Origin: Isurus oxyrinchus
Taxonomy: Eukaryota
Reading direction: 5' to 3'
Length of the DNA stretch: 64,000 bases
NCBI GenBank assembly: GCA_026770705.1
Contig: JANJGN010000838.1
Coordinates: 1 to 64,000, forward strand
Below the pieces are notes generated by a model that had not been told where the DNA came from, did not search any database, and saw nothing but the letters and a program-made list of their open reading frames with translations. The position numbers and the translations under genes are program-made. This document shows positions 3,005-34,129 of the stretch, in pieces. Numbering within the stretch: position 1 is the stretch's first letter; every line of letters begins with the position of its first letter.

Positions 3005-3253
3005 TCAATTTTTCTGGAACCTGATCTGTGTGTATTCTGTGTCCTCGCTCCTGTGCACAGTCCTGTCACCGCTGGGCAGCTTTGAAAAGTTGATGTTGGC
3101 GTAGAAAAGCTCGCCTGGTTTGTCGGGGTTCCCATGTCCAACATCGCCTCCCACTGCATCTTCAGAGAGACCCCGGGGAGCTGGGGTCTCCCCCTCGCTA
3201 GTTGCGTCTCTCTTTGTGTTCTGGGGCTCAGTAATCAGCACGTTCTGTTCATC
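3005..3253 (-). CDS. Tail cassette 4 terminal exon DEQN...GELFYANINF...TEYTQIRFQKN* (ITIM-like plus ITSM-like)
   Basis: Intact acceptor, 249 nt open. LFYANI and TEYTQI parallel the CD33 motifs LHYASL and TEYSEV. Confidence 0.8.
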   Translation of the reverse strand, partial: DEQNVLITEPQNTKRDATSEGETPAPRGLSEDAVGGDVGHGNPDKPGELFYANINFSKLPSGDRTVHRSEDTEYTQIRFQKN

Positions 3254-3750
3254 CTACAGAGAAATGGAAACAGAAGACATCCTCACATCAATTACTGTTA
3301 CTGATAGGGTTAAATTATTGTGCAGACTCATTTAATTCTCTCTCTCCTATCGGATAAAAGAAACCACCAATGGCAGTGCAGCACTCCCTCAGTACTGACC
3401 CTCCAACAGTGCAGCACTCCCTCAGTCCTGACCCTCTGACAATACAGCGCTCCCTCAGTACTGACCCATCGACAGTGCAGCACTCCCTCAGTACTGACCC
3501 TCTGTCAGTGCAGCACTCCCTCAGTACTGACCCTCCAACAGTGCAGCACTCCCTCAGTACTGACCCTCCAACAGTGCAGCACTCCCTCAGTACTGACCCT
3601 CTGTCAGTCTCACACTCAATCGGTAATGGCTCTGGTGAGTGACGGCTTGTATGCTGCACACAGGTGCCTGGTGTGAGGCTCAATAACATGAACCTTGTAA
3701 TCAGAGAGAGGATTAGAGAGAGAGATAGAGATGAAGGGACAGAGACAGAG

Positions 3751-4683
3751 TGTTATGAATCTATTAATGTATGTAATGTAATTGCAAACTGTCTTTTTAA
3801 ACAGAGGTTTAGTCTGTGTGTGTGCCTGTGTGTATTTTAATTGGATTAAAGACAGCCAGTCTGGGTGCTTTGATGTATAGTAGTTTTGAGATGTAAACAA
3901 AGAGGTAAAGTGGTAATTTGCATTTTTAAATAACACATTCAAAGCCTGAGAGTGAAATCTTAAACCAATCAACGTTTATATTACTAATAAAATTGATACG
4001 ATGAAAGGGGATTTATTATTGGAAGAGATGGAGTTCAAAGGTCCTGATGATACAATGCGAATTTACCTTCAAACAGAAGCCATAAGACCATCAGACATAG
4101 GAGGAGAAATTAGACCATTCGGTCCATCGAGTCTGCTCCACCATTCATACATGGCTGATAAGTTTCACAAACCCCATTCTCCCACCTTCTCTCCTAACCT
4201 TTGATCCCCTGACCAATCAAGAGCGTATCAATCTCCGTCTTCTTTACACTCAAGAGCTGGGTATAACTTGAGCAGTTTTGTGTGTGCAGAGCAGACGCTT
4301 GTAACAGCAAAGCAGCTGTAAGCCTACACCTGTCTGCAAAAAAACCAAAGTGAAAGGAACCTCATTTGGAATTTGTGAGGTGAAAATGCTTTGCCTGGTG
4401 TCTGCTTAAAGACAATGGGTTGTCTTAGAGGAGATTAGTTTGAGAATTTGTTAAAAATTTATGATAATACTAGTTTGTAGCCATGTGCATATGTTTAACT
4501 TGTGTAAATTAATAAATGTCTCAAGTAGTTTGATATAAAACCATCTCGAGAACTGGTGGTCTTATTCCTGAATTTAGAGATGCATCTCAAACATTCCACT
4601 GGGAAATATAGGTTATGACAGTTGTTTAAAGTTTCCCTCTGGGATTTTAAACAACAGCCTTTACCAGTTGCTGTGTCATAACA
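3751..4683 (+). mobile_element. Solo-LTR-like element (copies at 6836-7769, 9854-10787, 12946-13699)
   Basis: Inverted termini TGTTATGA...TCATAACA and an internal AATAAA. A CR1-tail fragment is nested at ~4073-4250 in three of the four copies. Confidence 0.65.
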
Positions 4684-4818
4684 GAGAGACAGCATGATAC
4701 TGAACCATTGCTGACTCCACAGATACAAATCAGTGGGTAACTGGGCTGGGAATCTGGGACATGTGTTGTCTACACACTGAGATTGAAGCTTTGGAGTGAG
4801 TGTAAACAGCTCCTGTAC

Positions 4819-4900
4819 CTGGTGTTTCACAGAGAGTGAACTGGGGGTCAATGCAATGTCACTGGTCCCTGAAACTCTCTCCTCCATCGCTGTCTTTCTC
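4819..4900 (-). CDS. Tail cassette 4 juxtamembrane exon RKTAMEERVSGTSDIALTPSSLSVKHQ
   Basis: Intact AG and GT sites, 82 nt, open frame. Confidence 0.7.
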
Positions 4901-5042
4901 CTGCAATAACACAATATCACACTGTGGTTATCATATAGCAGCGAGTCAGTGCAGCACAGACACAGAGTCCTCTGTAACCTTACACCGACAACTGGACTGT
5001 CTCTTTAAATCAGTTCTGCACAAAGCACAGAATCAAGAAACT

Positions 5043-5485
5043 TGACACCATCCAGGACAAAGCAGCCCGATTGATCTACACCCCATCCACCACATTAAAC
5101 GTTCACTCCCTCCACCACGAACACACAGTGGCAGCAGTGTGTGTACCATCTACAAGATGCACTGCAGCAACTCAGCAAGGCTCCTTCAACAGCACCTTCT
5201 AAACCCACGACCTCTACCATCTAGAAGGACAAGGGCAGCAGACACATGGGAACACCACCACCTGGAAGTTCCCCTCCAAGTCACTCAGCATCCTGACTTG
5301 GAAATATATCACCGTTCCTTCACTGTCGCTGGGTCAAAATCCTGGAACTCCCTCTCTAAAATCACTTTGGGTGTACCTACGCCACATGGACTGCAGCGGG
5401 TCAAGAAGGCAGCTCACCACCACCTTCTCAAGGGCAATTAGGGATGGGCATTAACGCTGACATCACCAGTGACAGCCACATTCGA
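5043..5485 (+). mobile_element. LINE 3'-end fragment (copies ~8129-8571, 11147-11589, 14059-14510)
   Basis: Similar to the reverse complement of ~760-1170 (TIYKMHCSNS...FTVAGSKSWNSL). Confidence 0.75.
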
Positions 5486-5517
5486 TGAAAGAATTAAAAA
5501 TCTCACAGCTCAATGTA

Positions 5518-5523
5518 TTTATT
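5518..5523 (-). terminator. Candidate poly(A) signal AATAAA, tail cassette 3
   Basis: tttatt on the + strand, ~535 nt downstream of the stop. Confidence 0.45.
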
Positions 5524-6056
5524 GTGATCCTGCTGCACACACGCCCTGTCGAAGGAGCCTTTGTGGTTCCATTGTTAATCGAAGCAGATCAGAGTTACTA
5601 CAACTACTTGCATTTATATAGCACCTTCAATGTAGCAAAATGTCCCAAGGCTCATCCGGGGCTTGTTAGTGACATCTTCACCTGACTCTGAGGCACATGA
5701 GGAGATATTAGGGACAGGAGACCAACAGCTGAGTCAACAAAGTCAGTTATTAACGGGCATCTTAAAGGAGGAGCTGGAGATAGAGAATGAGAGACAGACA
5801 CAGAAAGAAAGACAGAGAGAGGGAGAGAGAGAGAGAGACAGAGAGACAGAGAGAGACAGTGAATCTCGGTCCCCAATGGCTCAGCATCCAGTCCTCTCTG
5901 GAGAAGCATTTCATTCCAAACCACACCAATCGCAGCCCAATTCCATCCCTTCCTCCCTCTCTCCCCCTGTCCCCCGGTGGGTTGCTTCCTGTTCCCAGGA
6001 ATCTCAATCCCTACCCCCACACCCACACCTCCTCACTCCCATTCCCCATTTCTCAT

Positions 6057-6305
6057 TCAGTTATGCTCGAACCTGATCTGTGCGTATTCCGTCTCCTCTT
6101 CCCTGTGGACAGACCCATCACCACTGGACATCCTCAAGACTTGGGGATTGGCGTAGAGAAACTCTTCAGGTTTGTCGGGGTTCCCATGTCCAACATCGGC
6201 TCCCACTGCATCTTCAGAGAGACCCCGGGGAGCTGGGGTCTCCCCCTCGCCAGTTGCGTCTCTCTTTGTGTTCTGGGGCTCAGTAATCAGCACGTTCTGT
6301 TCATC
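6057..6305 (-). CDS. Tail cassette 3 terminal exon DEQN...EEFLYANPQV...TEYAQIRFEHN*
   Basis: Intact acceptor, 249 nt open. Confidence 0.7.
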   Translation of the reverse strand, partial: DEQNVLITEPQNTKRDATGEGETPAPRGLSEDAVGADVGHGNPDKPEEFLYANPQVLRMSSGDGSVHREEETEYAQIRFEHN

Positions 6306-7904
6306 CTACAGAGAAATGGAAACAGAAGACATCCTCACATCATTTACTGGTACTGATAGGGTTAAATTATTGTGCAGACTCATTTAATTCTCTCTCTCCT
6401 ATCGGATAAAAGAAACCACCTATGGCAGTGCAGCACTCCCTCAGTACTGACCCTCCAACAGTGCAGCACTCCCTCAGTGCTGACCCTCCGACAATACAGC
6501 GCTCCCTCAGTACTGACCCATCGACAGTGCAGCGCTCCCTCAGTACTGACCCTCTGTCAGTGCAGCACTCCCTCAGTACTGACCCTCCAACAGTGCAGCA
6601 CTCCGTCAGTACTGACCCTCTGTCAGTGCAGCACTCCCTCAGTACTGACCCTCCAACAGTGCAGCACTCCCTCAGTACTGACCCTCTGTCAGTCTCGCAC
6701 TCAATCGGTAATGGCTCTGGTGAGTGACGGCTTGGATTCTGCACACAGGTGCCTGGTGTGAGGCTCAATAACATGAACCTTGTAATCAGAGAGAGGATTA
6801 GAGAGAAAGATAGAGATGAAGGGACAGAGACAGAGTGTTATGAATCTATTAATGTATGTAATGTAATTGCAAACTGTCTTTTTAAACAGAGGTTTAGTCT
6901 GTGTGTGTGCCTGTGTGTATTTTAATTGGATTAAAGACAGCCAGTCTGGGTGCTTTGATGTATAGTAGTTTTGAGATGTAAACAAAGAGGTAAAGTGGTA
7001 ATTTGCATTTTTAAATAACACATTCAAAGCCTGAGAGTGAAATCTTAAACCAATCAACGTTTATATTACTAATAAAATTGATACGATGAAAGGGGATTTA
7101 TTATTGGAAGAGATGGAGTTCAAAGGTCCTGATGATACATTGCGAATTTACCTTCAAACAGAAGCCATAAGACCATAAGACATAGGATGAGAAATTAGAC
7201 CATTCGGTCCATCGAGTCTGCTCCACCATTCATACATGGCTGATATGTTTCACAAACCCCATTCTCCCACCTTCTCTCCTAACCTTTGATCCCCTGACCA
7301 ATCAAGAGCGTATCAATCTCCGTCTTCTTTACACTCAAGAGCTGGGTATAACTTGAGCAGTTTTGTGTGTGCAGAGCAGACGCTTGTAACAGCAAAGCAG
7401 CTGTAAGCCTACACTTGTCTGCAAAGGAACCAAAGTGAAAGGAACCTCATTTGGAATTTGTGAGGTGAAAATGCTTTGCCTGGGTGTCTGCTTAAAGACA
7501 ATGGGTTGTCTTAGAGGAGATTAGTTTGAGAATTTGTTAAAAATTTATGATAATACTAGTTTGTAGCCATGTGCATATGTTTAACTTGTGTAAATTAATA
7601 AATGTCTCAAGTAGTTTGATATAAAACCATCTCAAGAACTGGTGGTCTTATTCCTGAATTTAGAGATGCATCTCAAACATTCCACTGGGAAATATAGGTT
7701 ATGACAGTTGTTTAAAGTTTCCCTCTGGGATTTTAAACAACAGCCTTTACCAGTTGCTGTGTCATAACAGAGAGACTGCATGATACTGAACCATTGCTGA
7801 CTGCACAGGTACAAATCAGTGGGTAACTGGGCTGGGAATCTGGGACACGTGTTGTCGACACACTGAGATTGAAGCTTTGGAGTGAGTGTAAACAGCTCCT
7901 GTAC

Positions 7905-7986
7905 CTGGTGTTTCACAGAGAGTGGACTGGGGGTCAATGCAATGTCTCTGGTCCCTGAAACTCTCTCCTCCATCGCTGTCTTTCTC
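7905..7986 (-). CDS. Tail cassette 3 juxtamembrane exon RKTAMEERVSGTRDIALTPSPLSVKHQ
   Basis: Intact AG and GT sites, 82 nt, open frame. Confidence 0.7.
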
Positions 7987-8603
7987 CTGCAATAACACAA
8001 TATCACACTGTGGTTATCATATAGCAGAGAGTCAGTGCAGCACAGACACAGAGCCCACTGAAACCTTACACCGACAACTGGACTGTCTCTTTAAATCAGT
8101 TCTGCACAAAGCACAGAATCAAGAAGCTTGACACCATCCAGGACAAAGCAGCCCGATTGATCGACACCCCATCCCCCACATTAAACATTCACTCCCTTCA
8201 CCATGAACACACAGTGGCAGCAGTGTGTGTACCATCTACAAGATGCACTGCAGCAACTCAGCAAGGCTCCTTCAACAGCACCTTTCAAACCCACGACCTC
8301 TACCATCTAGAAGGACAAGGGCAGCAGACACATGGGAACACCACCACCTGGAAGTTCCCCTCCAAGTCACTCACCATTCTGACTTGGAAATATATCAACG
8401 TTCCTTCACTGTCGCTGGGTCAGAATCCTGGAACTCCCTCTCTAACAGCACTTTGGGTGTACCTACACCACATGGACCGCAGTGGGTCAAGAAGGCAGCT
8501 CACCACCACCTTCTCAAGGGCAATTAGGGATGGGCATTAACGCTGACGTCACCAGTGACAGCCACATTCGATGAAAGAATTAAAAATCTCACAGCTCAAT
8601 GTA

Positions 8604-8609
8604 TTTATT
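8604..8609 (-). terminator. Candidate poly(A) signal AATAAA, tail cassette 2
   Basis: tttatt on the + strand at the homologous position. Confidence 0.45.
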
Positions 8610-8874
8610 GTGACCCTGCTGCACACACGCCCTGTCGAAGGAGCCTTTGTGGTTCGATTGTTAATCGAAGCAGATCAGAGTTACTACAACTACTTGCATT
8701 TATATAGCACCTTCAATGTAGCAAAATGTCCCAAGGCTCATCCGGGGATTGTTAGTGACATCTTCACCTGACTCTGAGGCACATGAGGAGATATTAGGGA
8801 CAGGAGACCAACAGCTGAGTCAACAAAGTCAGTTATTAACGGGCATCTTAAAGGAGGAGCTGGAGATAGGGAAT

Positions 8875-8935
8875 GAGAGACAGACACAGAAAGAAAGACA
8901 GAGACAGGGCGAGAGAGAGAGAGAGAGAGGGAGAG

Positions 8936-8977
<42 letters not shown>
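8875..8977. repeat. (GA)n-rich microsatellite in tail 3' UTR (also ~5785-5857, 11893-11987)
   Basis: Directly visible; length differs between units. Confidence 0.9.
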
Positions 8978-8979
<2 letters not shown>

Positions 8980-9176
8980 TGAATCTCGGTCCCCAATGGC
9001 TCAGCATCCAGTCCTCTCTGGAGAAGCATTTCATTCCAAACCACACCAACCGCAGCCTAATTCCATCCCTTCCTCCCTCTCTCTCCCTCTCCCCCAGTGG
9101 GTTGTTTCCTGTTCCCAGGAATCTCAATCACTACCCCCACCCTGATACCTCTTCACTCACTCTCCCCATTTCTCAT

Positions 9177-9425
9177 TCAGTTATGCTCGAACCTGATCTG
9201 TGCGTATTCCGTCTCCTCTTCCCTGTGGACAGACCCATCACCACTGGACATCCTCAAGACTTGGGGATTGGCGTAGAGAAAATCTTCAGGTTTGTCGGGG
9301 TTCCCATGTCCAACATCGCCTCCCACTGGACCTTCAGAGAGACCCCGGGGAGCTGGGGTCTCCCCCTCACTAGTTGTATCTCTGGTTGTGTTCCGGGGCT
9401 CAGTAATCAGCACGTTCTGTTTACC
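9177..9425 (-). CDS. Tail cassette 2 terminal exon GKQN...EDFLYANPQV...TEYAQIRFEHN*
   Basis: Intact acceptor, 249 nt open. Confidence 0.7.
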   Translation of the reverse strand, partial: GKQNVLITEPRNTTRDTTSEGETPAPRGLSEGPVGGDVGHGNPDKPEDFLYANPQVLRMSSGDGSVHREEETEYAQIRFEHN

Positions 9426-10922
9426 CTACAGAGAAATGGAAACAGAAGACATCCTCACATCATTTACTGGCACTGATAGGGTTAAATTATTGTGCAGACT
9501 CGTTTAATTCTCTCTCTCCTATCGGATAAAAGAAACCACCTATGGCAGTGCAGCACTCCCTCAGTACTGACCCTCCAACAGTGCAGCACTCCCTCAGTGC
9601 TGACCCTCCGACAATACAGCGCTCCCTCAGTACTGACCCTCCGACAGTTCAACATTCCCTCAGTACTGTCCCTCCGACAGTGCAGCACTCCCTCAGTACT
9701 GACCCTCTGTCAGTCTCGCACTCCCTCGGTAATGGCTCTGGTGAGTGACGGCTTGGATGCTGCACACAGGTGCCTGACGTGAGGCTCATTAACAAGAACC
9801 TTGTAATCAGAGAGAGGATGAGAGAGAGGGATAGAGGAGGGAGAGAGACAGAGTGTTATTAATCTATTAATGTTTGTATTGTAATTGCAAACTGTCTTTT
9901 TAAACAGAGGTTTAGTCTGTGTGTGTGTCTGTGTGTATTTTAATTGGATTAAAGCCAGCCAGTCTGGGTGCTTTGATGTATAGTAGTTTTGAGATGTAAA
10001 CAAAGAGGTAAAGTGGTAATTTGCATTTTTAAATAAAACATTCAAAGTCTGAGAGTGAAATCTTAAACCAATCAACGTTTATATTACTAATAAAATTGAT
10101 ACGATGAAAGGGGATTTATTATTGGAAGAGATGGAGTTCAAAGGTCCTGATGATACATTACGAATTTACCTTCAAACAGAAGCCATAAGACCATAAGACA
10201 TAGGAGGAGAAATTAGACCATTCGGTCCATCGAGTCTGCTCCACCATTCATACATGGCTGATATGTTTCACAAACCCCATTCTCCCACCTTCTCTCCTAA
10301 CCTTTGATCCCCTGACCAATCAAGAGCCCATCAATCTCCGTCTTCTTTACACTCAAGAGCTGGGTATAACTTGAGCAGTTTTGTGTGTGCAGAGCAGATG
10401 CTTGTAACTTCAAAGCAGCTGTAAGCCTATACTTGTCTGCAAAGGAACCAAAGTGAAAGGAACCTCATTTGGAATTTGTGAGGTGAAAATGCTTTGCCGG
10501 GGTGTCTGCTTAAAGTCTATGGGTTGTCTTAGAGGAGATTAGTTTGAGAATTGGTTAAAAATTTATGATAATACTAGTTTGTAGCCATGTGCATATGTTT
10601 AACTTGTGTAAATTAATAAATGTCTCATGTAGTTTGATATAAAACCATCTCGAGAACTGGTGGTCTTATTCCTGAATTTAGAGATGCATCTCAAACATTC
10701 CACTGGGAAATATAGGTTATGACAGTTGTTTAAAGTTTCCCTCTGGGATTTTAAACAACAGCCTTTACCAGTTGCTGTGTCATAACAGAGAGACTGCATG
10801 ATACTGAACCATTGCTGACTCCACAGGTACAAATCAGTGGGTAACTGGGCTGGGAATCTGGTACACGTGTTGTCTACACACTGAGATTGAAGCTTTGGAG
10901 TGAGTGTAAACAGCTCCTGTAC

Positions 10923-11004
10923 CTGGTGCTTCACAGAGAGTGAACTGGGGGTCAATGCAATGTCACTGGTCCCTGAAACTCTCTCCTCCATCGCTGTCTT
11001 TCTC
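10923..11004 (-). CDS. Tail cassette 2 juxtamembrane exon RKTAMEERVSGTSDIALTPSSLSVKHQ
   Basis: Intact AG and GT sites, 82 nt, open frame. Confidence 0.7.
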
Positions 11005-11621
11005 CTGCAATAACACAATATCACACTGTGGTTATCATATAGCAGAGAGTCAGTGCAGCACAGACACAGAGCCCACTGAAACCTTACACCGACAACTGGA
11101 CTGTCTCTTTAAATCAGTTCTGCACAAAGCACAGAATCAAGAATCTCGACACCATCCACAACAAAGCAGCCCGATTGATCGACACCCCATCCACCACATT
11201 AAACATTCACTCCCTCCACCATGAACACACAGTGGCAGCAGTGTGTGTACCATCTACAAGATGCACTGCAGCAACTCAGCAAGGATCCTTCAACAGCACC
11301 TTCCAAACCCACGACCTCTACCATCTAGAAGGACAAGGGCAGCAGACACATGGGAACACCACCACCTGGAAGTTCCCCTCCAAGTCACTCACCATCCTGA
11401 CTTGGAAATATATCACCGTTCCTTCACTGTCGCTGGGTCAAGATCCTGGAACTCCCTCTCTAACAGCACTGTGGGTGTACCTACACCACATGGACCGCAG
11501 CGGGTCAAGGAGGCAGCTCACCACCACCTTCTCAAGGGCAATTAGGGATGGGCATTAACGCTGACATCACCAGTGACAGCCACATTCGATGAAAGAATTA
11601 AAAATCTCACATCTCAATGTA

Positions 11622-11627
11622 TTTACT
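11622..11627 (-). terminator. Candidate variant poly(A) signal AGTAAA, tail cassette 1
   Basis: tttact on the + strand at the homologous position. Confidence 0.35.
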
Positions 11628-11953
11628 GTGACCCTGCTGCACACACGCCCTGTCGAAGGAACCTTTGTGGTTCCATTGTTAATCGAAGCAGATCAGTGTT
11701 ACTACAACTACTTGCATTTATATAGCACCTTCAATGTAGCAAAATGTCCCAAGGCTCATCCGGGGCTTGTTAGTGACATCTTCACCTGACTCTGAGGCAC
11801 ATGAGGAGATATTAGGGACAGGAGACCAACAGCTGAGTCAACAAAGTCAGTTATTAACGGGCATCTTAAAGGAGGAGCTGGAGATAGGGAATGAGAGACA
11901 GACACAGAAAGAAAGACAGAGACAGGGAGAGAGAGAGAGAGAGAGAGAGGGAC

Positions 11954-11989
<36 letters not shown>

Positions 11990-12185
11990 TGAATCTCTAT
12001 CCCCAATGGCTCAGCATCCAGTCATCTCTGGAGAAGCATTTCATTCCAAACCACACCAACCGCAGCCCAATTCCATCCCTTCCTCCCTCTCCCCCCTCTC
12101 CCCCAGTGGGTTGTTTCCTGTTCCCAGGAATCTCAATCACTACCCCCACCCTGATACCTCCTCACTCACTCTCCCCATTTCTCAT

Positions 12186-12434
12186 TCAGTTATGCTCGAA
12201 CCTGATCTGTGCGTATTCCGTCTCCTCTTCTCTGTGGACAGACCCATCACCACTGGACATCCTCAAGACTTGGGGATTGGCGTAGAGAAACTCTTCAGGT
12301 TTGTCAGGGTTCCCATGTCCAACATCGCCTCCCACTGCATCTTCAGAGAGACCCCGGGGAGCTGGGGTCTCCCCCTCGCCAGTTGCGTCTCTCTTTGTGT
12401 TCTGGGGCTCAGTAATCAGCACGTTCTGTTTACC
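12186..12434 (-). CDS. Tail cassette 1 terminal exon GKQN...EEFLYANPQV...TEYAQIRFEHN*
   Basis: tttctctgtag acceptor, phase 0, 249 nt to stop, two Tyr motifs placed as in CD33-related Siglecs. Confidence 0.85.
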   Translation of the reverse strand, partial: GKQNVLITEPQNTKRDATGEGETPAPRGLSEDAVGGDVGHGNPDKPEEFLYANPQVLRMSSGDGSVHREEETEYAQIRFEHN

Positions 12435-15400
12435 CTACAGAGAAATCGAAACAGAAGTTATCCTCACATCATTTACTGGCACTGATAGGGTTAAATTATT
12501 GTGCAGCCTTGTTAATGTCAGTCGTGTCTCAGTTGGTTTAACCCTCTCTCTCATGTCATATGAAAGATACCACCTATGGCAGTGCAACGCTCCCTCAGGA
12601 CTGACCCTCCGACAGTGCAGCGCTCCCTCAGTACTGACCCTCCGACAGTGCAGCGCTCCCTCAGTATTGACCCTCCGACAGTGCAGCGCTCCCTCAGTAC
12701 TGACACTCCGACAGTGCAGCTCTCCCTCAGTACTGACCCTCCGACAGTGCAGCACTCCCTCAGTACTGACCCTCTGTCAGTCTTGCACTCCCTCGGTAAT
12801 GGTTCTGGTGAGTGACGGCTTGGATTCTGCACTCAAGTGTCTGGTGTGAAGCTCATTAACATGCACCTTGTAATCAGAGAGAGGATGAGAGAGAGAGAAA
12901 GAGAGAGAGAGAGAAAGAAAGGGAGGTTGGGATAGAGAGAGAGACTGTCATGATGCGATTAATAAATATTATGTTATTGGAAATTATTTTTATTCACATC
13001 GGGGTTTAGTCTGTGGGTGTGTCTGTGTGTGTTTTAATTGGATTAAAGCCAGCCAGTCTGGGTATTTGATGTATAGTAGTTTTGAGATGTAAACTGAGAG
13101 ATAGAGATTTGTATTTTTAAACAGAGCATTCAAAGCCTGGGAGTGAAATCTTAAACCAATCAACATTTATTTTATTGATAAAATTGATACTATGACAGAG
13201 GATTTATTGTTAGAAGAGATGGAGTTCAAAGGTCCTGATGATTCAATGAGAATTTACATTCAAAGAGCAGTGTTGGGTATAACTTGAGCAGTTTTGTGTG
13301 TGCAGAGCAGAGGCTTGTAACATCAAAGCAGCTGTAAGCCTACACCTGTCTGCAAAGGAACCAAAGTGAAAGGAACCTCATTTGGAATTTGTGAGGTGAA
13401 AATGCTTTGCCTGGAATCTGCTGAAAGTCTACGGGTTATCTTAGAGGAGATTAGTTTGGGAATTTGTTAAAATGTTATGATAATGCTAGCTTGTAGCCAT
13501 GTGCATATGTTTAACTTGTGTTAATTAATAAATGTCTCATGTAGATTGATATAAAACCATCTCGAGAACTGGTGGTCCTATTCTTGAATTTAGAGCTGCA
13601 TCTCAAACATTCCACTGGGAAATATAGGTTATGACAGTTGTTTAAAGTTTCCCTCTGGGATTTTAAACAACAGCCTTTACCAGTTGCTGTGTCATAACAG
13701 AGAGACAGCATGATACTGAACCATTGCTGACTCCACAGGTACAAATCAGTGGGTAACTGGGCTGGGAATCTGGGACACATGTTGTCTACACACTGAGATT
13801 GAAGCTTTGGAGTGAGTGTAAACAGCTCCTGTACCTGGTGATTCACAGAGAGTGGACTGGGGGTCAATGCAATGTCTCTGGTCCCTGAAACTCTCTCCTC
13901 CATCGCTGTCTTTCTCCTGTAATAACACAATATCACACTGTGGTTATCATATAGCAGAGAGTCAGTGCAGCACAGACACAGAGCCCACTGTAACCTTACA
14001 CCAATAACTGGACTCTCTCATTAAATTACATCTGCACAAAGCACAGAATCTAGAATCTCGACACCATCAACAACAAAGCAGCCCGATTTATCGACACCCC
14101 ATCCACCACATTAAACATTCACTCCCTCCACCATGAACACACAGTGGCAGCAGTGTGTGTACCATCTACAAGATGCACTGCAGCAACTCAGCAAGGCTCC
14201 TTCGACAGCACCTTCCAAACCCACGACCTCTACCATCTAGAAGGACAAGGGCAGCAGACACATGGGAACACCACCACCTGGAAGTTCCCCTCCAAGTCAC
14301 TCACCATCCTGACTTGGAAATATATCACCGTTCCTTTACTGTCGCTGGGTCAAGATCCTGGAACTCCCTCTCTAACAGCACTGTGGGTGTACCTACACCA
14401 CATGGACTGCAGCGGGTCAAGAAGGCAGCTCACCAACACCTTCTCAAGGGCAATTAGAGATAGCATATTAATAGCGGCCTCATCAGTGACCGCCACATTC
14501 GATGTAAGAATTTAAAATCTCACAGCTCAGGAGGAAGCCACTCAGCCTATCGTGCCTGTGCTGGCCCTTTGTAAAAACTGTCCAATTAGTCCTAAACAAA
14601 TTTTTATATTAAAATCAAGTTAAATCTTCAGACTTACTTTCTCACACAGATGAAGATGAAGATTTCAGCCAGTAAAACACTCAACATGATCCCAGCCGTG
14701 AACAATCCTACTGTCCATTTACTGGTGTCTCTACCTGTAAAAACAGCCATGAATTACTGCACTACAGGTTTGGAATGATGCTCCGATGTATCTCTTCCTC
14801 CCTCCTCTCCATCTGTAAAGTACCTAGTCTNNNNNNNNNNNNNNNNNNNNNNNNNNNNNNNNNNNNNNNNNNNNNNNNNNNNNNNNNNNNNNNNNNNNNN
14901 NNNNNNNNNNNNNNNNNNNNNNNNNNNNNNNNNNNNNNNNNNNNNNNNNNNNNNNNNNNNNNNNNNNNNNNNNNNNNNNNNNNNNNNNNNNNNNNNNNNN
15001 NNNNNNNNNNNNNNNNNNNNNNNNNNNNNNNNNNNNNNNNNNNNNNNNNNNNNNNNNNNNNNNNNNNNNNNNNNNNNNNNNNNNNNNNNNNNNNNNNNNN
15101 GTTGAAGTTTGCATTAACTCACGTTCCACAGTGATGATTATGAACCCCTCCACTGCTCCATGTTCATTCTCTGCCACACACTGATAGTCTCCAGTGTCCC
15201 TGGATGTAACGTGAGGAATCACCAACCACAGCTCATTGTTGGAACTTGTTCTGTTCATTGGGACATTAAGATGTCGCCACGTCAGGTTAGAAGCTGGGAA
15301 GCTCTCGACAGAGCAGATTATCACTGCAGAATTCCCCTCAATTATATTGATCGATGAAGCATTAATCACATCAAGAGAAGCAATTGAGAGATTCTGTGGT

Positions 15401-18400
15401 GCGTCTGAAAACAAATAAAGATCAGTTGCTTACATTGACTGTGAAACACTTTGAGAGACTTTGAGAATGTGAAAGGTGTGACATCAATGAAGGTTCCTTC
15501 ACCACAAAGCACATAATCCAGGCAGACACTTCAGTTCAGCACTGAGAGAGTGCTGAGGGAGAGCTGCACTGTAGCAGGTGCAGTGCTGATGGAGTGCTGC
15601 ACAGTCAGACTGTCAGTTCTGATTGAGAACTGCAATGTGGGAGGGACAGTACTGAGGGAGCATTGCACTGTTAGAGAGTCAGTAATGAAAGAGTGCTGCA
15701 CTGTGGGTAGGTCAGTACTGAGGGAGAGCTGCACTGTAGCAGGTGCAGTGCTGATGGAGTGCTGCACAGTCAGACTGTCAGTTCTGATTGAGAACTGCAA
15801 TGTGGGAGGGACAGTACTGAGGGAGCATTGCACTGTTAGCGAGTCAGTACTGAGGCAAACACACTGTTGGCTGTATACTTCAGGCCCTCTATGGTCAAGT
15901 GGAGCACCATGTACCTTTAAGAGAATGCAAGCGGACTAACCATGTGACAGTACTGACCAATCATCAGACAGGTTGGGCTACTGGGTAACTGTATTTCTCG
16001 AGCTGGAGGTGGTTGTGGGGGTGCGCAAGGATTCAGTGTTCAGTCCTCTGCTACAATAAATAATCACAGTTTGTTCTTATGTCTGTCTCTGTCCGTTACT
16101 GATAGTAAGAATCAACTAGCGAGTGTATATGAAGGTGTGCAATTCGAGTTTACTCGACTGGTGAATTCAGAGACTCAAGACATAAAACTGGGGGTGAGGA
16201 TGAACACAGCTAAAAACACAGCCCCTGAGTGAGGACCCACAAGGCCAGTGGCGCAGAGCATTAGAAAGAGAATCTGTACGGAGGGTGTAAAATAGGCTGC
16301 AGTCCGAGCAGGAAGCAGTGCTGCACTGAGAATTTGGGGGAAAAACCCTGCAGAATCCTGATCACAGGGATCCCAGCAAAACTCAAAGAGAGCACGAAAC
16401 CCAGCGCAGAAAAGACAAGAGCGACAGAGAGGGAGTTAACAAAGAGGTGACTGCTCTTAAAGCAACAATACATTTAAAGAGGTACATGAAAGGACAATGG
16501 CTGTGGACAGAATGTTATAAGAGACCCCAGAGAGCGGGTAACTCTGCGGAAGGTAAAAGATGAATCAATCGACGGCAGTGAAGGAAGCTGCAGTAAGACA
16601 AACACCTGAATTGGACATTAACTGGGAAGACATCGGAAGTGCTGCCCCCTTGCAGTCGTCGACGATGCTGCAGTTCCGGCGTGTCGATCCATTCAACCCC
16701 ATTTCAGGTGACTGGTCTCAGTGTGTCGAACGCCTAGTGTTCTTTTTTTACCGCTAATGACATCACGGGAGAGGAGAAGAAGAGGGAGATTCTTGTATCC
16801 ACATGTGGGAGCAAAACGTCCGGGCTGATCCTCAGCCTCACGTCACCGACCATCCCCGACTCGAAGACTGTCAACCAGTGAATAAAAATTGTTCCAAACC
16901 ACCTGAGACCACAGCCCTCAGTTACTATTCAGCACTTCATCACCCATATCAAACCCTTACCCTACCGCCCAGCATCGAACGGCAGGGCTGAGCAGGGCAT
17001 CCAAACCTTTAAATCCAGGGTGAGAAAGATGGAAGGGGATTCCATCGGCACGAGATTGTCCCGGTTCCTCTTCACAAACTGGGCCAGGCCACAAACAACG
17101 ACCAGCATTGGCCCTGCAGAACTACTAATGAAGAGACATCTCCGCACCCACCTGACCCTTATCCAGCCGGATTTAAAGGGGAGGCTGGAGAAAAGCCAAG
17201 AGACGCAGGAGACCAGGCACGATGGTCATGCTGGGAAAGAACTTTCACTGTGGGAGGTGCAGTCCTCGCGATGAACTATGGAGATGGGTCCAATTGGCTG
17301 TTAGGCAAGGTGAGTGCAGTAACTGGATCCCTCTCCTCTCATGTATCAGTAAGCGACACATGGATCATTTCCCCAAAATAACGCTGGTCCCACAAGAAGA
17401 AATGAAGTCTTCATCTACACTTGAGTCTGGGCCACATGTAGAGGACAGGTCCCAAAATTTGGAAGGAGCAACATTCGAGAAAGCCTCCTGAGAGACTTGA
17501 TTTGTAAATAGTTATTAGTGTAATTAGTTCACTGGTTATTAAGTTTGTCAACTGCACTTTTTAAGTAAAGGGGGAAGGATGTGGTAAAGTGGAGTTCCAT
17601 GTACAGTTAAGAGAATGCAAGTGGATAAACCATGTGACAGTGCTGCCCAATCATTGTACAGTGCGGGCTACTGGTTAACTGTAAGTCTAGAGCTGGAGGT
17701 GGGTGTGGGAACATGCAAGGATTTAGTGCTCTGCCCTCTTGTAATAAATAATCAGCTTGTTCTAATGTCGGTCTCTCTTGGTTATTGATAGCGAGCATCA
17801 ACTAACAAGTGTATATGAAGGAGTGCAATTCGAGTTTACTCAACCAGTGAACTCATAGACTCAAGATATAAAACCAACAAACAGTCAGGGAGAGATGGAC
17901 AATCCAACATGTGATCACATTTCAGAGATGTGTAAGAATAATAAAGCAGTAATACTCAGGGATTTTAACTACCCAAATATTAACTGGGACAGCTTTAGTG
18001 AGCAAGGTAGGGAGGGAGAAAAATTCTGAAGTTGCATCCAGGAGAACTTTTTTAGTCTGTGCATAGAAAGCTCAACAAGGGAGGGGACAGTTCTGGACCT
18101 AATATATGGAAAAGCGCCGGGAAAGGTGGAAAGCGTATCAGTAGGGGAGATAGTGATTGTAACTCAATTGGATTTAGGACAGGTATGGAGAAGGATAAGT
18201 TTGTGCTGGGAATAAAAATTCTAAACTGGGGAAAGGCTAATTTTTCTAAGATGAGATATGATTTAGTCCAATTGGACTGGGAGAAGCTCTTTGCAGATAA
18301 AACTGTGTCAGAGCAGTGGGAGGCATTCAAGGAGGGAATAGCGAGAGTACAGAGCAGATATCTTCCTGTAAAGACAAAGAGGGAGACCAAGTCTGGAGAA

Positions 18401-21400
18401 CCCTGGAAGACAAGGAACATAAAGGTTAGGATTGAGAAAAAAGAGAAGCTTATGGCAGATACTGAGGGCTCAATACAACAGAGTCCCTAGAGGAGTATAA
18501 ATAGTGCAGAGGGGAACTGAAAAAGGACATTAGGAAAGATAAGAGAGTGCATGAGAAAGCACTGGTGGGTAGAATAAAGCAAAACCCAGAGGGATTTTTT
18601 AAATATGTAAAGAGCAGCAGAATAACTCGGTAAAGAGTGGGGCCGATTAGGGACTATCGAGGTAATGTGTGTGTGGACCTGGAAGACGTGGGTACAGTCC
18701 TCAATGAATACTTTGCATCAGTCTTCACAATGGAAAAGGATGATGCAGGTATAACATCAGGGTGGAGGGCAGTGAAATATGAGAGGAAATTAACACAGAG
18801 AGAGGAGGTACTAGTGGGTTTAGTGGCCTGAAAAGTGGATAAATCCACAAGCCTGGATGAGATGAATCCAAAGCTGTTGAGGGAGGAAAGGGAAGAGATA
18901 TCAGGGGCCCTGGCAGTAATTTTCAAATCCTCTCTGGCCACAGGTGAGGTGCCAGAGGACTGGAGGATGGCTAATGTTGTCCCATTGTTAAAAAAGGGAG
19001 GAAGGGATAGATCAGGAAATTACAGGCCAGTCAGTCTAACCTCGGTGGTGGGGAAGTTACTAGTAAGAATTCTGAAGGACAGAATGAATCTGCACTGGGA
19101 GAGACAAGGATTAATCTGGGATATTCAGCATGGATTTGTTAAGGGAAGGTCATGTTTGACAAACCTGATCAAATCTTTTGAGGAGGTAACCAGGAGTGTT
19201 GATCAGAGTAATGCCTTTGATGTGGTCGACATGGGCTGAGGAAGGCTTTTGATCAGGTGCCTCATGGCAGAGAGGCCAGGAAAGTAAGAGCCCATGGGAT
19301 CCAAGGCAAAGTGGCACGTTGGATCCAATATTGGCTGAGGCAGGAAGCAGAGGGTGATGGTGGAGGGATGTTTCTGTGACTGGATGTCTGTTTCCAGTGG
19401 GGTTCCACAGGGCTCAGTGCTGGGGCACTTGCTGTTTGTGGTGTATATAAATGAATTGGACTTATATAAAGGGGGAATGATCAAGACGCAAATGGAATTC
19501 AACCTGGAAAAGTGTGAGGTGATGCACTTGGGGAGGGAGTTGCTGACCAGCATGGACATGATGGGCTAAATGGCCTCCTTCTGTCCTGTAAGTGTCTATG
19601 AGTCTATGAGTCCATGATGCACTGTTGAGTCAGTAGTAAGGATGTACTGCCTGTCAGGGGTCACTTTTTACCAGTGAAACACCAATGGTTTGTTGGTAAA
19701 CAAAGTGCTGTATGTGGGAGCTTGCTGTGCACATTTGATACTATTCCAGCTAATGTAGAATGAAGGGTGTTTGTACTTACATAGCACAGTCAGTACGAGG
19801 GTCCGCTTCGATGAAACAGATGGATATCTCACTCTGCAGCTGAGAGTGTGTCCGTGGTGTTTGAGTGATGGGATCAGGGTCAGAACAGAAGTATAGGTCA
19901 GAGTGACACCATGCTGAGTTACAGTGTTTGAGACTGATCCAGGTACGTCAGTGAGAGTGTCCCAGGTTAAGACAGGTGCTGCTGTTCCATTGCACCTTGT
20001 GTTGAAGGTGCAGCTTACATCCACACGCTTTCCTGCAATAATTTCAGCAGGGAATATCATGGGTTTATCTGTGAAATCTAACAGACAGAGAATGGATCCT
20101 TTTAGAGAAATATAACGTGAAGCATCAGTTCAAATAGAAACCACAGTCCCACAAGAGAAAGCACTTTTACAAGGATGATATCAGAACTGAGAGGTTACAA
20201 TGATCATTTTAGAATTGTCTCTTTTTACACTTGTTGAATCTCTGTCACTCAGATTAATACACTCTCACTCAGTGACCCTTGATTTGACCAGACTGGGTGA
20301 GGGTGGAGGAACAGCTCACAGCTTGGGGAGAACAGACTCAGCATTTGGAAATGGATATGGAGACACTGGAGAGGGTGGTAAAAAGCTTCACAAGGATGAT
20401 CGCAGCAATGTGAGGCTTTACCTATCAGGAGAGGATGTACAGGCTGGGTCTCTGTTCTCTTGAACAGAGAAGGTTGAGGGGTGACATCATTTGATCTTTG
20501 AAGTAGTGAAAGGTTTTGATCGAGTAGACATGGAGAGAGTTTTTCCACTCCTCACAATGAACAAAACCAGAGGCTGACAATATAAGATCCTCACTAATAA
20601 ATCCAATGGGGAATTCAGGAGAAACTTCTTTACCCAGAGAGTGGGGAGAATGTGTGCTTCAAGAATCACTTCATTGGCTGTGAATCGATTTTGGATCGTC
20701 CTGAGGTGGTGAAAGGCGCTATAGGAATGCAAGTCATTCTGTTGTCAATTTGTTGGAATTTAAAACAGGATTAGAGAGCTTGATAAGATTGGATAACCTG
20801 ATAACATTGATGGACACACTCAATCTATTTAATCATTGATATTAAAGTGAGTAATAGAGGTTGCTTTAGGACTGAACTGGAAGCTATCACCAGGTTATTG
20901 AGAATCAGACAGTGTGTTACAATAAGCTTTGTTTTGTGTTAATATGTAAACGTCACAGTTGTGTTATTTCCCACTGAGTGTTGGATGTGAATTGTTGAGT
21001 AATTATAACACAGCACTTACCAGAAATGTGAAGCCGGGTTCCAGGGTAATAGTTGTAGTTATTTGGACTGCCAAATTCTATTCTGAAAAGATAAGGTCCT
21101 TCATCTTCCTGTCTGATGTTGTTTATAATCAGGGAACAGTCGCCATCTTTCAGGTCTCCAGACAGCCGGGTCCGATGGTGGAACCGTGGTAACTCGTGAC
21201 TGTGATCCTTGGAGTGAAAGGCAAAGGGATTGTCGAATTTGTGTTTCTCGTTATTAAACCAGATTCCGACTCGTGGTTGGCTTTCCAAATGTGCTGGATA
21301 ACTGTAATGACATGGAATCTGTACACACGAACCTTCCTGCGCTGTCACCTCTCGTGGAGTGTCACCTTTCCACTCTTGTGACAGTCCAACTGGGGAGAGA

Positions 21401-22379
21401 AATATCTATATTTAATTCTGGATCCTCAATGTCAACTGAATCTTCATTGTCACTTCATTGTCTAAGGAATCTCGTTGGATCCTCATTGTCTGAGGAGTCT
21501 CTTTGGATCCTCAATGTCTAAGGGATTATTTCTGATCCAAACCCCATATTGTTGTATTGTTGATTCCGATGCAGCATTGTAGACTGACTTGTCCCCAAGC
21601 TCAGCACTGACCCTACTCCAGCAGACACTGTGAAACACACTAACAAAGTGCCTCTAGCCTGAGCTCTGCATGTGTTGAGAGAAAGACAAATATGCAAACT
21701 GAATATTGACACCTTTACACACGGACAGCTTTACCTTCCTTCTCTCTTTCAGTTATCTTGCTCCCTTATTGAAGTATCTAGCAAGGTGAGAATGGACAGG
21801 AAGTGTGACACTGAACAGCCTGTCTATTCTAGGAGCTGCTGTGTTGTCTTCATGGGAAATTCTGACGAAAATCAGCAAAAGACACTAATTTCAGGCCATT
21901 GCTGTCAGAGTCCTAGCCACAAGATAGACTTCATCCCCTGAATTTTGTGTCCAATTTTCTACTCAAACTTTCACCTCCCCAAACCTCCACCCCGACCCCA
22001 CAAGTCACTCGCTGACCTACACTGGCTCCCAGTCCAGCAACACCTCGATGTGATTATTTTCACACTTGATTTCCAATCCCTCCATCACTCCGCTCCACTC
22101 CCTGTCTCTGTAACCCCCTCCAAACCTACAACCCTCTGTGATCTCTGCTCTCCTCCAATTCTGCTGTCAGACAGGGAGTCAGTGTATATCAGTGAGCACA
22201 GGGGTGATGGGTGAATGGGACTTGGTGTGAGATTGTACACTGGCTCACTGCTGAATCAGTTGCCAATCACAGCTCAATAAGAATGGTCTTTTACAAAGAC
22301 TATTAACCATAAATCTGTCCAAGCTGACAATGATATTACCTTGGAGAAGTGACAGGAGGAAGTAAGATTTCCCGATCAT
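12186..22379 (-). CDS. Siglec/CD33-like receptor, spliced gene model (leader-V-C2-C2-TM-cytoplasmic), 471 aa with the proximal tail if the gap hides no exon
   Basis: Exons of 40+369+297+282+97+82+249 nt (1416 nt) join in frame through GT-AG introns with phases 1,1,1,1,2,0. Siglec V-set signature: GSCVQIPC, DCSL and YLFRIE with the essential Arg. Confidence 0.88.
13835..13916 (-). CDS. Tail cassette 1 juxtamembrane exon RKTAMEERVSGTRDIALTPSPLSVNHQ
   Basis: ttattacag acceptor, CAG|GTACAG donor, 82 nt, phase 2-0, matching both the TM exon and the terminal exon. Confidence 0.82.
14638..14734 (-). CDS. Transmembrane exon RDTSKWTVGLFTAGIMLSVLLAEIFIFICVRK (not in ORF track)
   Basis: tttttacag acceptor, GTAAGT donor, 97 nt, phase 1-2. 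Hydrophobic stretch followed by a basic stop-transfer. Confidence 0.88.
14831..15100. other. Assembly gap (270 N)
   Basis: Run of n between the second C2 exon and the TM exon. Confidence 1.
15123..15404 (-). CDS. Siglec second C2/I-set Ig exon
   Basis: ttgttttcag acceptor, GTGAGT donor, 282 nt. Encodes YAPQNLSI...IICSVESFPASNLTW...DTGDYQCVAENEHG. Confidence 0.9.
15889..17874 (+). mobile_element. Internally deleted Gypsy-type LTR retrotransposon in a Siglec intron
   Basis: Diverged direct repeats at ~15889-16188 and ~17580-17874, PBS-like tgggggtgagga, PPT taaagggggaagga. Gag-like DPFNPISGDWSQCVERL and integrase-like RFLF...PQTTTSIGPAELLM remnants. Confidence 0.85.
17880..19610 (+). mobile_element. 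Degraded CR1 LINE
   Basis: ORF2 pieces NYRPVSLTSVVGK, QHGFVKGRSCLTNL and SGVPQGSVLG; tail gatgggctaaatggcctccttctg...ctatgagtctatgag. Confidence 0.9.
19781..20077 (-). CDS. Siglec first C2-set Ig exon
   Basis: 297 nt, phase 1-1. Encodes DFTDKP...VSCTFNTRCNGTAAPVLTW...TSVLTLIPSLKHHGHTLSCRV, including the extra Cys typical of Siglec domain 2. Confidence 0.92.
20330..20740 (+). mobile_element. CR1 3' fragment plus SINE-like tail
   Basis: Resembles the C-terminal ORF2 region of the CR1 at 40600-41000. Confidence 0.6.
21021..21389 (-). CDS. Siglec V-set Ig exon
   Basis: tctctccccag acceptor, GTAAGT donor, 369 nt, phase 1-1. Encodes QEWKGDTPREVTAQEGSCVQIPCHYSY...GDCSLIINN...GPYLFRIEF. Confidence 0.93.
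22340..22379 (-). CDS. Siglec leader exon MIGKSYFLLSLLQ
   Basis: ATG at 22379, hydrophobic peptide, phase-1 donor GTAATA. Upstream acceptor (ctttctctttcacag) puts the exon start at 22412. Conserved in three plus-strand copies. Confidence 0.85.
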
Positions 22380-29530: not shown

Positions 29531-29619
29531 GGGAAAAAGGTTAGTCACATTCGGACACAGCCTTGGCACTCCAAGGTTTAACAGTTTGCTTTCATACTTT
29601 GACAGCAACCACCTCCCAC

Positions 29620-29840
29620 TTTGTCTCACAGTGACACATCCACCCTTTCTCATTAAATACACAGAGGGAGCAGCACAGGAAGAGGTCATTCAGCCCAAGC
29701 AGAGTGTGTGGGCAGTTCCTCCCCAGGCGAGCAGTCGGACAGGTCCTGGGTAAGTAACGGAACGATTGGAATTCACTTCCACCACCAACACCGTCCTTTG
29801 TTGATGTTGTGACTTTATAAAGACAGATTCCAATAATTCA
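29620..29840 (+). pseudogene. Orphan copy of the putative Siglec promoter / first non-coding exon (partial copy also at 42259-42400)
   Basis: Near-identical to 33510-33725, donor at 29750, truncated by satellite. Confidence 0.7.
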
Positions 29841-34089: not shown

Positions 34090-34129
34090 ATGATCGGGAA
34101 ATCTTACTTCCTCCTGTCACTTCTCCAAG
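34090..34129 (+). CDS. Cassette A leader exon MIGKSYFLLSLLQ
   Basis: Identical peptide to the minus-strand leader, GTAATA donor, exon start 34048. Confidence 0.8.

Follow-up and report, generated by a model that had tools for sequence, protein, structure and literature searches.

The cytoplasmic tail of a Siglec-type receptor gene, encoded on the minus strand of a 64-kb window (the whole stretch of DNA that was analysed) from a lamniform-like shark, has been amplified in tandem as a whole module, and four tail cassettes stand behind a single transmembrane (TM) exon. The array is real. With a probability of roughly 40%, it reflects the young amplification of an older two-cassette tail in which cassettes may be added to one another, by transcriptional read-through combined with chaining or skipping.

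Receptor gene and ectodomain

All exons, poly(A) signals and SINE-like sequence given below lie on the minus strand. As placed by tblastn, the ectodomain exons run from a leader exon starting at 22379 (MIGKSYFLLSLLQ) through a V-set exon (20962-21405) and a C2-set exon (19776-20090) to the last Ig exon before the TM exon (15118-15405, ending at about 15118), and a retroelement lies inside the gene between 15.5 and 19.6 kb. The Siglec-type N-terminal V-set domain matches the Pfam profiles V-set (4.6e-11) and Ig_CD22 (4.6e-10), both above the cut-offs, and is followed by C2-set domains (C2-set_2, 6.3e-08; Ig_3, 7.7e-13) and then by the single hydrophobic TM exon. The best solved relatives of the ectodomain are Siglec-5 (3.3e-14), MAG, Siglec-8, Siglec-10 and CD33. 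In the alignment with Siglec-5, the strand F arginine (F-R-x-E) is conserved (ylFRIEfg with yfFRVErg), and so is the Siglec cysteine pattern C-x5-C ... C-S-L (sCvqipC with lCvlvpC, dCSL with nCSL). The V-set and Ig_CD22 matches and the rank of Siglec-5 among solved relatives uphold the Siglec-like identity proposed in an earlier note on this DNA.

The TM exon (14638-14734; 97 nt, entry phase 1, exit phase 2, ..WTVGLFTAGIMLSVLLAEIFIFICVRK) starts with GT after its AG acceptor, ends in ..GTGAGAAA with the donor AAA|gtaagt, and is 84-88% identical to shark Siglec models by tblastn. The intron that separates the last Ig exon from the TM exon contains a stretch of 270 N (14831-15100), so that the link between one ectodomain and the tail array crosses unread sequence.

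Four cassettes behind one TM exon

The cassettes, numbered from c4 nearest the TM exon to c1 at the distal end, each comprise an 82-nt exon and a 249-nt last exon. The 82-nt exons lie at 13835-13916 (c4; phase 2 to 0, RKTAMEERVSGTRDIALTPSPLSVNHQ), 10923-11004 (c3), 7905-7986 (c2) and 4819-4900 (c1), and all four can be read without a stop in the frame that the TM exon dictates, with ..cag| acceptors and CAG|gtacag donors. The last exons, each of 82 codons plus TGA behind a ..ctgtag| acceptor, are T4 (12186-12434), T3 (9177-9425) and T2 (6057-6305), all of type B, and T1 (3005-3253), a B/A hybrid. This agrees with the earlier description of four open cassettes with their AG and GT sites kept behind one TM exon of exit phase 2, and no further copies of the 82-nt or 249-nt exon were found elsewhere in the 64-kb window.

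The last exons differ in their tyrosine motifs. TEYxQI is kept in all four, and T1 carries the ITIM LFYANI together with TEYTQI, matching [ILVS]xYxx[ILV] plus the distal ITIM-like TEYxx[IV], whereas T2-T4 fail the ITIM with FLYANP (F at -2, P at +3) and retain TEYAQI. The hybrid break of T1 falls mid-exon: over its first ~135 nt it matches T2 at 98-99% identity, over its last ~115 nt it is only ~80% identical and of type A, and its homology to the other units stops about 34 nt beyond the stop codon. The private changes of T3 are clustered (RNTTRDTTS, EGPV, EDF), with the same states present in paralogues of other sharks, and the 5' half of T3 differs from T2 by 9.5 non-synonymous versus 2.5 synonymous changes.

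History of the array

The four units are arranged head to tail, are 2.9-3.1 kb long, and have exon-to-exon spacings of 2912, 3018 and 3086 nt; their length differences stem mostly from a 33-nt satellite and a CT microsatellite, and the unit nearest the TM exon has in addition an indel of about 160 nt. A SINE-like element of very high copy number opens the repeat unit in the TM-to-82 intron (14140-14529) and again starts the units at about 11616, 8598 and 5512, and contig depth is very high in the bins covering regions of this element (14048-14443 and 11276-11671). The element meets the preceding 3'UTR at the same junction among the units, with the common letters TGAGCTGTGAG. The amplified module consists of the 82-nt exon, the 249-nt last exon and the 3'UTR as far as a point some 10 nt beyond the poly(A) signal. 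Head-to-tail units, one junction type and a mosaic of identity characterize the array as a tandem segmental duplication with concerted evolution.

Introns lie 1.4-1.7% from the consensus in c1-c3 and 6.9% in c4, and over a stretch of about 2 kb c1 matches c2 at 98-99% identity. Identity among the units is patchy, with the site patterns 12|34 and 13|24, and a high-identity patch around T4 extends through about 570 nt of 3'UTR, an extent that points to a conversion or crossover tract rather than an exon-limited island. The ancestral tail would have held two cassettes, an ITIM-less type B in the TM-proximal place and an ITIM-bearing type A behind it; type B may later have gained copies through unequal crossing-over, with gene conversion patching them, to give B-B-B-(B/A hybrid).

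Internal donor, poly(A) signals and chaining

Each of the four last exons holds an in-phase GT (CAG|GT) after nt 233, 16 nt before its end, with exit phase 2, and this is the sole in-phase GT that keeps both Tyr motifs. It reads CAG|GTTCGA in T4 (last exonic base 12202), T3 (after 9193) and T2 (after 6073), and stands in a weaker context in T1 (CAG|GTTCCA). As 82 + 233 nt make 315 nt, a cassette cut at this site is a symmetric in-frame module of 105 residues. The earlier assertion that the 82-nt exons cannot be chained in frame holds for 82-to-82 joining and fails for 82 + 233 nt; its corollary, that the frame enforces one cassette per mRNA, does not follow, given the in-frame 315-nt module and four RefSeq models that chain two cassettes. 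The predicted chaining junction reads ..CAGATCAG|GAGAAAGAC, with an expected joint at 11004/12202 or its equivalents. The internal donor is weak, matching the MAG|GTRAGT consensus in six of nine places, and the conserved Arg-Phe codons (IRF), found in single-cassette relatives too, are enough to produce its GT.

In the chained RefSeq models, two cassettes are joined at TEYAQIR|[RK]KTA (P0001 and P0016 from Cetorhinus, P0015 and P0017 from Carcharodon); the first cassette is always 105 aa long, and the Tyr motifs are invariant with a pair identity of only 79-83%. P0017 has the order B then A, as in the window, and its B part, KPEEFLYANPQVLRMSSGDGSVHREEETEYAQIR, is identical to that of T4 and T2. 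These chained models are predictions by one pipeline, and those for the basking shark (2025) may build on those for the great white (2021). Single-cassette RefSeq models end either in B (P0005, P0018, P0019, P0020) or in A (P0002, P0003, P0023), so that B and A can each be taken as a genuine ending. Conservation of the five closing codons (FxxN, stop) extends across shark orders and argues for a terminal ancestral role of the 249-nt exon and against chaining.

The poly(A) signals differ among the units. Behind T4 stands AGTAAA (11622-11627, 559 nt after the stop), one change from AATAAA, and no canonical hexamer was found between T4 and the next 82-nt exon. AATAAA is present behind T3 (8604-8609, 568 nt after the stop, with the unit junction some 10 nt further on) and behind T2 (5518-5523, 534 nt after the stop), so that most transcripts should stop before T1, which speaks against distal use. 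The first canonical AATAAA behind T1 (1933-1938) lies 1067 nt after the stop, with ATTAAA and AATAAA within the 90 nt that follow it. At the sequence level, the features of a composite exon are present: CAG|GTTCGA in T2-T4, a poly(A) signal 534-568 nt past the stop and a fitting phase.

Under the preferred reading, splicing from the TM exon to the first cassette, c4, would produce the default tail. Each type-B last exon would be composite and may terminate the mRNA by means of a stop and a poly(A) signal of its own; on read-through, which the AGTAAA signal would favour behind T4, its CAG|GT site may instead splice it in frame to the next 82-nt exon. The resulting tails could contain one to four 105-residue modules and end in B (TEYAQI only) or in A (ITIM and TEYTQI). 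Cassettes would be additive and not necessarily exclusive, and the TM exon may also be spliced directly to a later cassette, skipping those before it. It is unlikely, on present evidence, that a large shark Siglec-like family operates a regulated "module counter" in which poly(A) versus internal splicing sets the number of Tyr-motif modules and the ITIM ending; if it did, one gene would be tunable from weakly to strongly inhibitory.

RNA-like contigs and rival readings

The joint 12433/13834, which skips 1400 nt with GT..AG on the minus strand, occurs in contigs of runs X1 and X2 and places the splice between the 82-nt and last exons precisely where predicted. At 14637, the loose end of a contig bears the first 13 nt of an 82-nt exon, so the TM-to-82 splice is also seen; this overhang is common to all cassettes and therefore assigns none. 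One sample contains two kinds of 82-nt exon, each joined to a last exon, with contig depths of 941 and 470, indicating expression of more than one cassette-like sequence. In the second of these kinds, a T4-like exon follows a c3/c1-like 82-nt exon, which the order of exons in the assembly does not allow, and at 9378 all 29 of 29 different X1 contigs carry a letter differing from the window. These two observations trace the contigs to paralogues, other alleles or another species, so that they are not assignable to cassettes. Among the best-supported contig joints listed, no skipping or chaining joint was found, an absence that in contig data proves little.

Quite possibly, only c4 is used and the three distal copies are young leftovers of crossing-over that contribute nothing to the protein. 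The first acceptor and the first 3' end usually prevail, and the lack of a skipping or chaining joint among the listed contig joints fits such disuse. The earlier note had pointed to intact cassettes, a state that the youth of the copies makes unremarkable: at about 1.5% from the consensus, c1-c3 are expected to be intact by chance, with a simulated probability of about 0.32 that none of the three would lose its open frame or splice sites, and their intactness is no evidence of selection. The non-synonymous share in T3 is likewise about what would be expected without constraint, and the T4 patch, in spanning the 3'UTR, is not exon-limited. Disuse of the distal copies sits less well with the AGTAAA signal behind T4, where a canonical hexamer is lacking before the next exon, with the B-then-A order common to the window and a Carcharodon model, and with the type-A end of T1, which is still near the A tails of single-cassette genes. 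Pairs only 79-83% identical also remain open with invariant Tyr motifs at four loci in two species, in a sample biased by the fact that the predictor could chain only open pairs.

It is rather unlikely that the TM exon joins any one 82-nt exon and then a downstream last exon, yielding alternative ITIM-less or ITIM-bearing tails. Such a choice is consistent with acceptors and donors that are all kept and nearly identical, with cassettes that differ in motif, with the two 82-nt exon types expressed in one sample, and with the 3-kb distance between units, over which the TM donor may stay free for later acceptors. However, the reading frame does not impose exclusivity, the supporting contigs cannot be assigned to cassettes, and among the RefSeq models found, none shows one ectodomain with different tails (P0019 and P0021, which differ along their whole length, are paralogues). 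Docking/selector RNA pairing is no better than chance, the TM-intron/selector complement amounting to a single 12-nt match at chance level, with a duplex energy at least as good in 227 of 300 shuffles. The alternative last-exon choice envisaged in the earlier note keeps its intact cassettes and differing motifs and loses its exclusivity by frame, and cassette-skipping transcripts are unseen among the best-supported contig joints.

An assembly inflated from near-identical repeats or haplotypes beside the gap, with fewer true units, is highly improbable, for although the run of N begins only 96 nt upstream of the TM exon, c1 and c2 are nearly identical and no more than 0.41 of the sampled words occur in the best DNA-like runs, divergence among the units is 1.5-7%, with private indels, satellite lengths and individual mosaics, and two-cassette arrays occur in models from two other species' assemblies.

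Comparison with known systems

The same TM exon with two cassettes behind it is found in XP_078389619.1, LOC144671602 (Cetorhinus maximus), LOC121274079 and LOC121274124 (Carcharodon carcharias), and these lamniform Siglec/CD33-like models share the 27-residue and 82-residue tail exons and both tail types with the window. LOC121274124 has the order B then A and a B motif block identical to that of the window. The tails of the lamniform RefSeq models are predicted as chains of two cassettes, against four cassettes in the window, and the models' identity to it of 76-90% indicates another species or a paralogue. CD33-like Siglecs have been reported absent from bony fish (PMC7226832). The ectodomains of the Siglec-5/-14 pair are kept alike by gene conversion while their signalling differs (PMC4042635). 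That pairing involves separate genes and TM exons, whereas variation in the window would arise within one gene, and unlike the paired Siglecs the shark array is without an activating partner (charged TM, tailless). Even with silent distal copies, the locus illustrates the rebuilding of a receptor family by unequal crossing-over and gene conversion, and gene models of such loci, chained or single, need long-read RNA support.

The immunoglobulin mu gene has a composite last exon that gives secreted or membrane mRNA, and the competition of cleavage with splicing is proven and regulated there. The shark last exon resembles it in having a stop and poly(A) signal of its own and, shortly ahead of that stop, an internal 5' splice site. 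In mu the downstream membrane-anchor exons differ, whereas the shark downstream exons repeat the same module and the choice between the two outcomes is solely inferred. CEACAM1-L/S, Fc gamma RIIB1/B2 and the short-tail form of CD33 are one-gene ITIM receptors with alternative cytoplasmic tails. In each, one ectodomain keeps or loses inhibitory Tyr motifs through RNA processing, as is envisaged for the window; these receptors use a single small exon or an alternative end, in contrast to the tandem complete tail cassettes of the shark gene.

Clustered protocadherin and UGT1A genes have variable first exons selected by promoter choice, and Dscam-type clusters rely on docking/selector RNA pairing. 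They share with the window tandem duplicated exons beside shared exons and a possible one-of-many choice, and differ from it in that the window shows no pairing above chance and its cassettes can be added in frame. Inhibitory immune receptors usually vary their signalling by separate genes or by a single optional exon; if the shark tail module were used as a repeatable cassette, it would represent a new way for one gene to vary signal strength.

Organization of the tail exon array

A minus-strand TM exon of 97 nt (14638-14734), which encodes ..WTVGLFTAGIMLSVLLAEIFIFICVRK and stops two bases into a codon, is followed downstream by four tandem units spaced 2912, 3018 and 3086 nt apart, each carrying one 82-nt exon and one 249-nt last exon on the same strand; these cassettes are named c4, adjoining the TM exon, to c1, the most distal. 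The 82-nt exons (13835-13916, 10923-11004, 7905-7986 and 4819-4900) all run from phase 2 to phase 0 with a cag/ acceptor and a CAG/gtacag donor, and each of the last exons, T4 to T1 (12186-12434, 9177-9425, 6057-6305 and 3005-3253), comprises 82 codons and a TGA stop. The earlier note's description of a single TM exon followed by four cassettes is exact, and no extra copy of the 82-nt or the 249-nt exon lies elsewhere in the 64-kb window. Its remark that the introns differ by indels also holds, much of the difference being length variation of a 33-nt satellite (..cagcactccctcagtactgaccct..) that forms arrays of 0.3-2.4 kb throughout the window, including one within every tail unit (3308-3772, 6360-6857, 9480-9845, 12514-12945, 15549-15853, 23188-23866, 29840-32238, 37400-38094, 41148-42260, 51278-52564 and 61295-62539). 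The TM segment itself reads LLAEIFIF, with a glutamate at the position that is glycine in all related shark models (LAGIFIF or LVGIFIF); the substitution amounts to one GGA/GAA difference, and a charge within the membrane span is unusual for an ITIM-type receptor.

The cassettes encode two types of tail. T1 ends in ..KPGELFYANINFSKLPSGDRTVHRSEDTEYTQIRFQKN, with an ITIM (LFYANI) and an ITIM/ITSM-like TEYTQI (type A), whereas T2-T4 end in ..KPEEFLYANPQVLRMSSGDGSVHREEETEYAQIRFEHN, which keeps TEYAQI and has lost the ITIM because of a proline at +3 (FLYANP, type B). Type A is the sole tail in the RefSeq shark models P0002, P0003, P0004 and P0023 as well as in more distant species, and type B is the sole tail in P0005, P0018, P0019 and P0020, which makes both of them established tail forms of this family. 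Two Cetorhinus maximus RefSeq models, P0002 and P0021, are identical over TM segment plus tail and differ in their ectodomains (V-V and a different V-C2-C2), reflecting either different ectodomain exon sets modelled on the same 3′ exons or very recent tail duplicates.

Possible in-frame chaining of cassettes, and 3′ ends

Within every last exon a CAG/GT follows nt 233 and lies 16 nt short of the exon end; it has the same exit phase of 2 as the TM exon, and a chainable cassette thus measures 82 + 233 = 315 nt, or 105 codons. This GT is the sole in-phase GT that retains both tyrosine motifs, and two cassettes joined through it would read ..CAGATCAG followed directly by GAGAAAGAC. Two cassettes per predicted protein, meeting at TEYAQIR/[RK]KTA, occur in four RefSeq models (P0001 and P0016 from basking shark, P0015 and P0017 from great white shark), all of them predictions of one pipeline in which the predictor could chain open pairs only. 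The first cassette in these models is always 105 residues long; the cassettes of a pair share only 79-83% identity and show no change at the tyrosines or in TEYAQIR. In P0017 a type-B cassette precedes a type-A one, and the B block is the same as that of T4/T2 in the window. The internal donor is weak, with 6/9 consensus matches, and its GT is present because of conserved Arg-Phe codons that are also found in single-cassette relatives; the T1 donor has C in place of the +5 G, and nothing lies downstream of T1 to join.

The 3′ ends of the units differ in their hexamers. AATAAA follows T2 at a distance of 534 nt and T3 at 568 nt, while the equivalent position behind T4 reads AGTAAA, with the canonical hexamer absent up to the next 82-nt exon; the first AATAAA behind T1 is 1067 nt away. 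Judged by these hexamers, the proximal end at T4 may be leaky and the middle ends at T3 and T2 look strong. The reading that we favor, tentatively and at a probability of about 0.4, is a default proximal tail with an optional in-frame extension into a following cassette.

Intactness and selection

The distal cassettes could instead be silent copies, a somewhat less probable reading. When exons were mutated in simulation at the intronic substitution and indel rate of their own unit and scored as open with splice sites, c1, c2 and c3 each survived with a frequency of 0.64-0.72 and all three together with about 0.32, the value for c4 being 0.10. The non-synonymous share of the T3 changes is about that expected under neutrality. 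With survival at this level and T3 behaving in a neutral-like manner, open frames cannot be taken as evidence that the distal cassettes are used. Intron distance to the four-copy consensus, satellites excluded, is 1.4-1.7% for c1, c2 and c3 and 6.9% for c4, against which the c4 exons lie only 1.7% from consensus (Fisher p ~5e-5). Constraint limited to the c4 exons was considered for this difference and discarded: the high-identity patch around T4 extends for ~570 nt through the 3′UTR into the next unit and is therefore read as a conversion or crossover tract, not an exon-limited island of selection.

RNA-like contigs and the proposed exclusive use of tails

Transcript data consisted of Logan contigs, from runs guessed to be RNA, placed on 8900-14830. 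In contigs from runs X1 and X2, which represent a single sample of organism A, the two c4 exons are spliced together at 12433/13834, with precise excision of the predicted 1400-nt GT..AG intron, and two X1 contigs that stop at 14637 with an overhang of the first 13 nt of an 82-nt exon capture the splice from the TM exon. Another X1 contig combines a c3/c1-like 82-nt exon with a T4-like last exon, an order absent from the assembly; at position 9378 none of 29 different X1 contigs has the window's letter, and at 9329 the T3-specific letter is found in most of the contig depth. Assignment to cassettes by diagnostic letters consequently failed: given mosaics absent from the window, an impossible exon order and 29 variants at one place, these contigs are a mixture of paralogues, alleles or a sister species and are not assignable to cassettes. 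Runs of organism B, probably the species of origin, have almost zero depth on the exons. Among the joints listed for contigs on 8900-14830, which show presence and not absence, none represents chaining or the skipping of a cassette by direct splicing from the TM exon to a later one.

The earlier note had proposed that the tails are mutually exclusive by frame, with one selected per mRNA by alternative last-exon choice. The frame argument stands for 82-to-82 joining, which shifts the frame, but fails for whole cassettes, which are chainable through the internal GT, and an exclusive choice among tails is rather unlikely. In-frame extension and exclusive choice could coexist.

Docking/selector RNA pairing of the Dscam type was sought between the unique piece of the post-TM intron and the regions that precede the four 82-nt exons; it did not rise above chance and is rejected. 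The scan returned one 12-nt complement (14552-14563 with 13968-13979), approximately the chance expectation in 941 nt, and 227 of 300 mononucleotide shuffles gave an equal or better duplex energy.

History of the array

Identity between units is patchy, with a site pattern that is mostly 12/34, and both informative sites within the 82-nt exon follow 13/24. T1 is a hybrid: the stretch that starts in the upstream intron and reaches about nt 135 of the exon is 98-99% identical to c2, the remainder ~80%, and homology of its unit to the others stops 34 nt beyond the stop codon. T3 carries clustered changes (RNTTRDTTS, EGPV and EDF) matching the residues that paralogues have in other sharks, which points to ectopic gene conversion as their probable source. 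The repeat unit starts at a very high-copy SINE-like element in the TM-to-82 intron and ends ~10 nt beyond the poly(A) hexamer of a type-B 3′UTR, the junction sharing the letters TGAGCTGTGAG. Such a pattern is that of unequal crossing-over and conversion within a multigene family. The most plausible reading of the array is that an older two-cassette tail was recently amplified; the older layout was probably B-then-A, as in P0017, with B amplified in the window.

A 270-N stretch (14831-15100) occupies the intron between the Ig exon, which ends at ~15118, and the TM exon, so that the join between array and ectodomain crosses unread sequence. The four-unit array is genuine in the present assembly and agrees with related genomes, and an assembly artefact behind it is highly improbable.

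Neighboring features and relation to known Siglecs

A second Siglec-like gene lies on the plus strand, head-to-head with the first, with its leader exon at 34090 and the two leaders ~11.7 kb apart. It repeats a V-set plus C2-set exon pair three times (35633-37235, 46188-47789 and 56205-57807) in ~10-kb units that are 94-97% identical, and within the window its side lacks TM and tail exons like those of the minus-strand gene. The triple pairs could represent a multi-V ectodomain, alternative ectodomain cassettes or three truncated gene heads. Retroelement-like ORFs (reverse transcriptase, integrase) are located at ~17000-19600 in the large intron of the minus-strand gene and at ~24200-26500 between the genes, and self-matches reveal a tandem repeat of ~1 kb with a period of ~43-44 nt at 28520-29540, between both leader exons.

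No literature on shark Siglec tails was found, and CD33-related Siglecs are reported missing in bony fish (PMC7226832). The closest database proteins are RefSeq models named sialic acid-binding Ig-like lectin or CD33-like from Carcharodon carcharias and Cetorhinus maximus, with remoter relatives in Stegostoma, Hemiscyllium and Scyliorhinus and none identical to the window gene among the relatives found, which makes the window a stretch of another lamniform-like shark or a paralogous locus. Upstream of the TM exon, the minus-strand gene comprises leader (start 22379), V-set, C2-set and Ig exons. Its V exon exceeds the Pfam cut-offs for both the V-set and the CD22-like first Ig domain, has Siglec-5, MAG, Siglec-8, Siglec-10 and CD33 as its best solved relatives, and aligns with Siglec-5 at the essential arginine (FRIE) and in the Siglec cysteine pattern.
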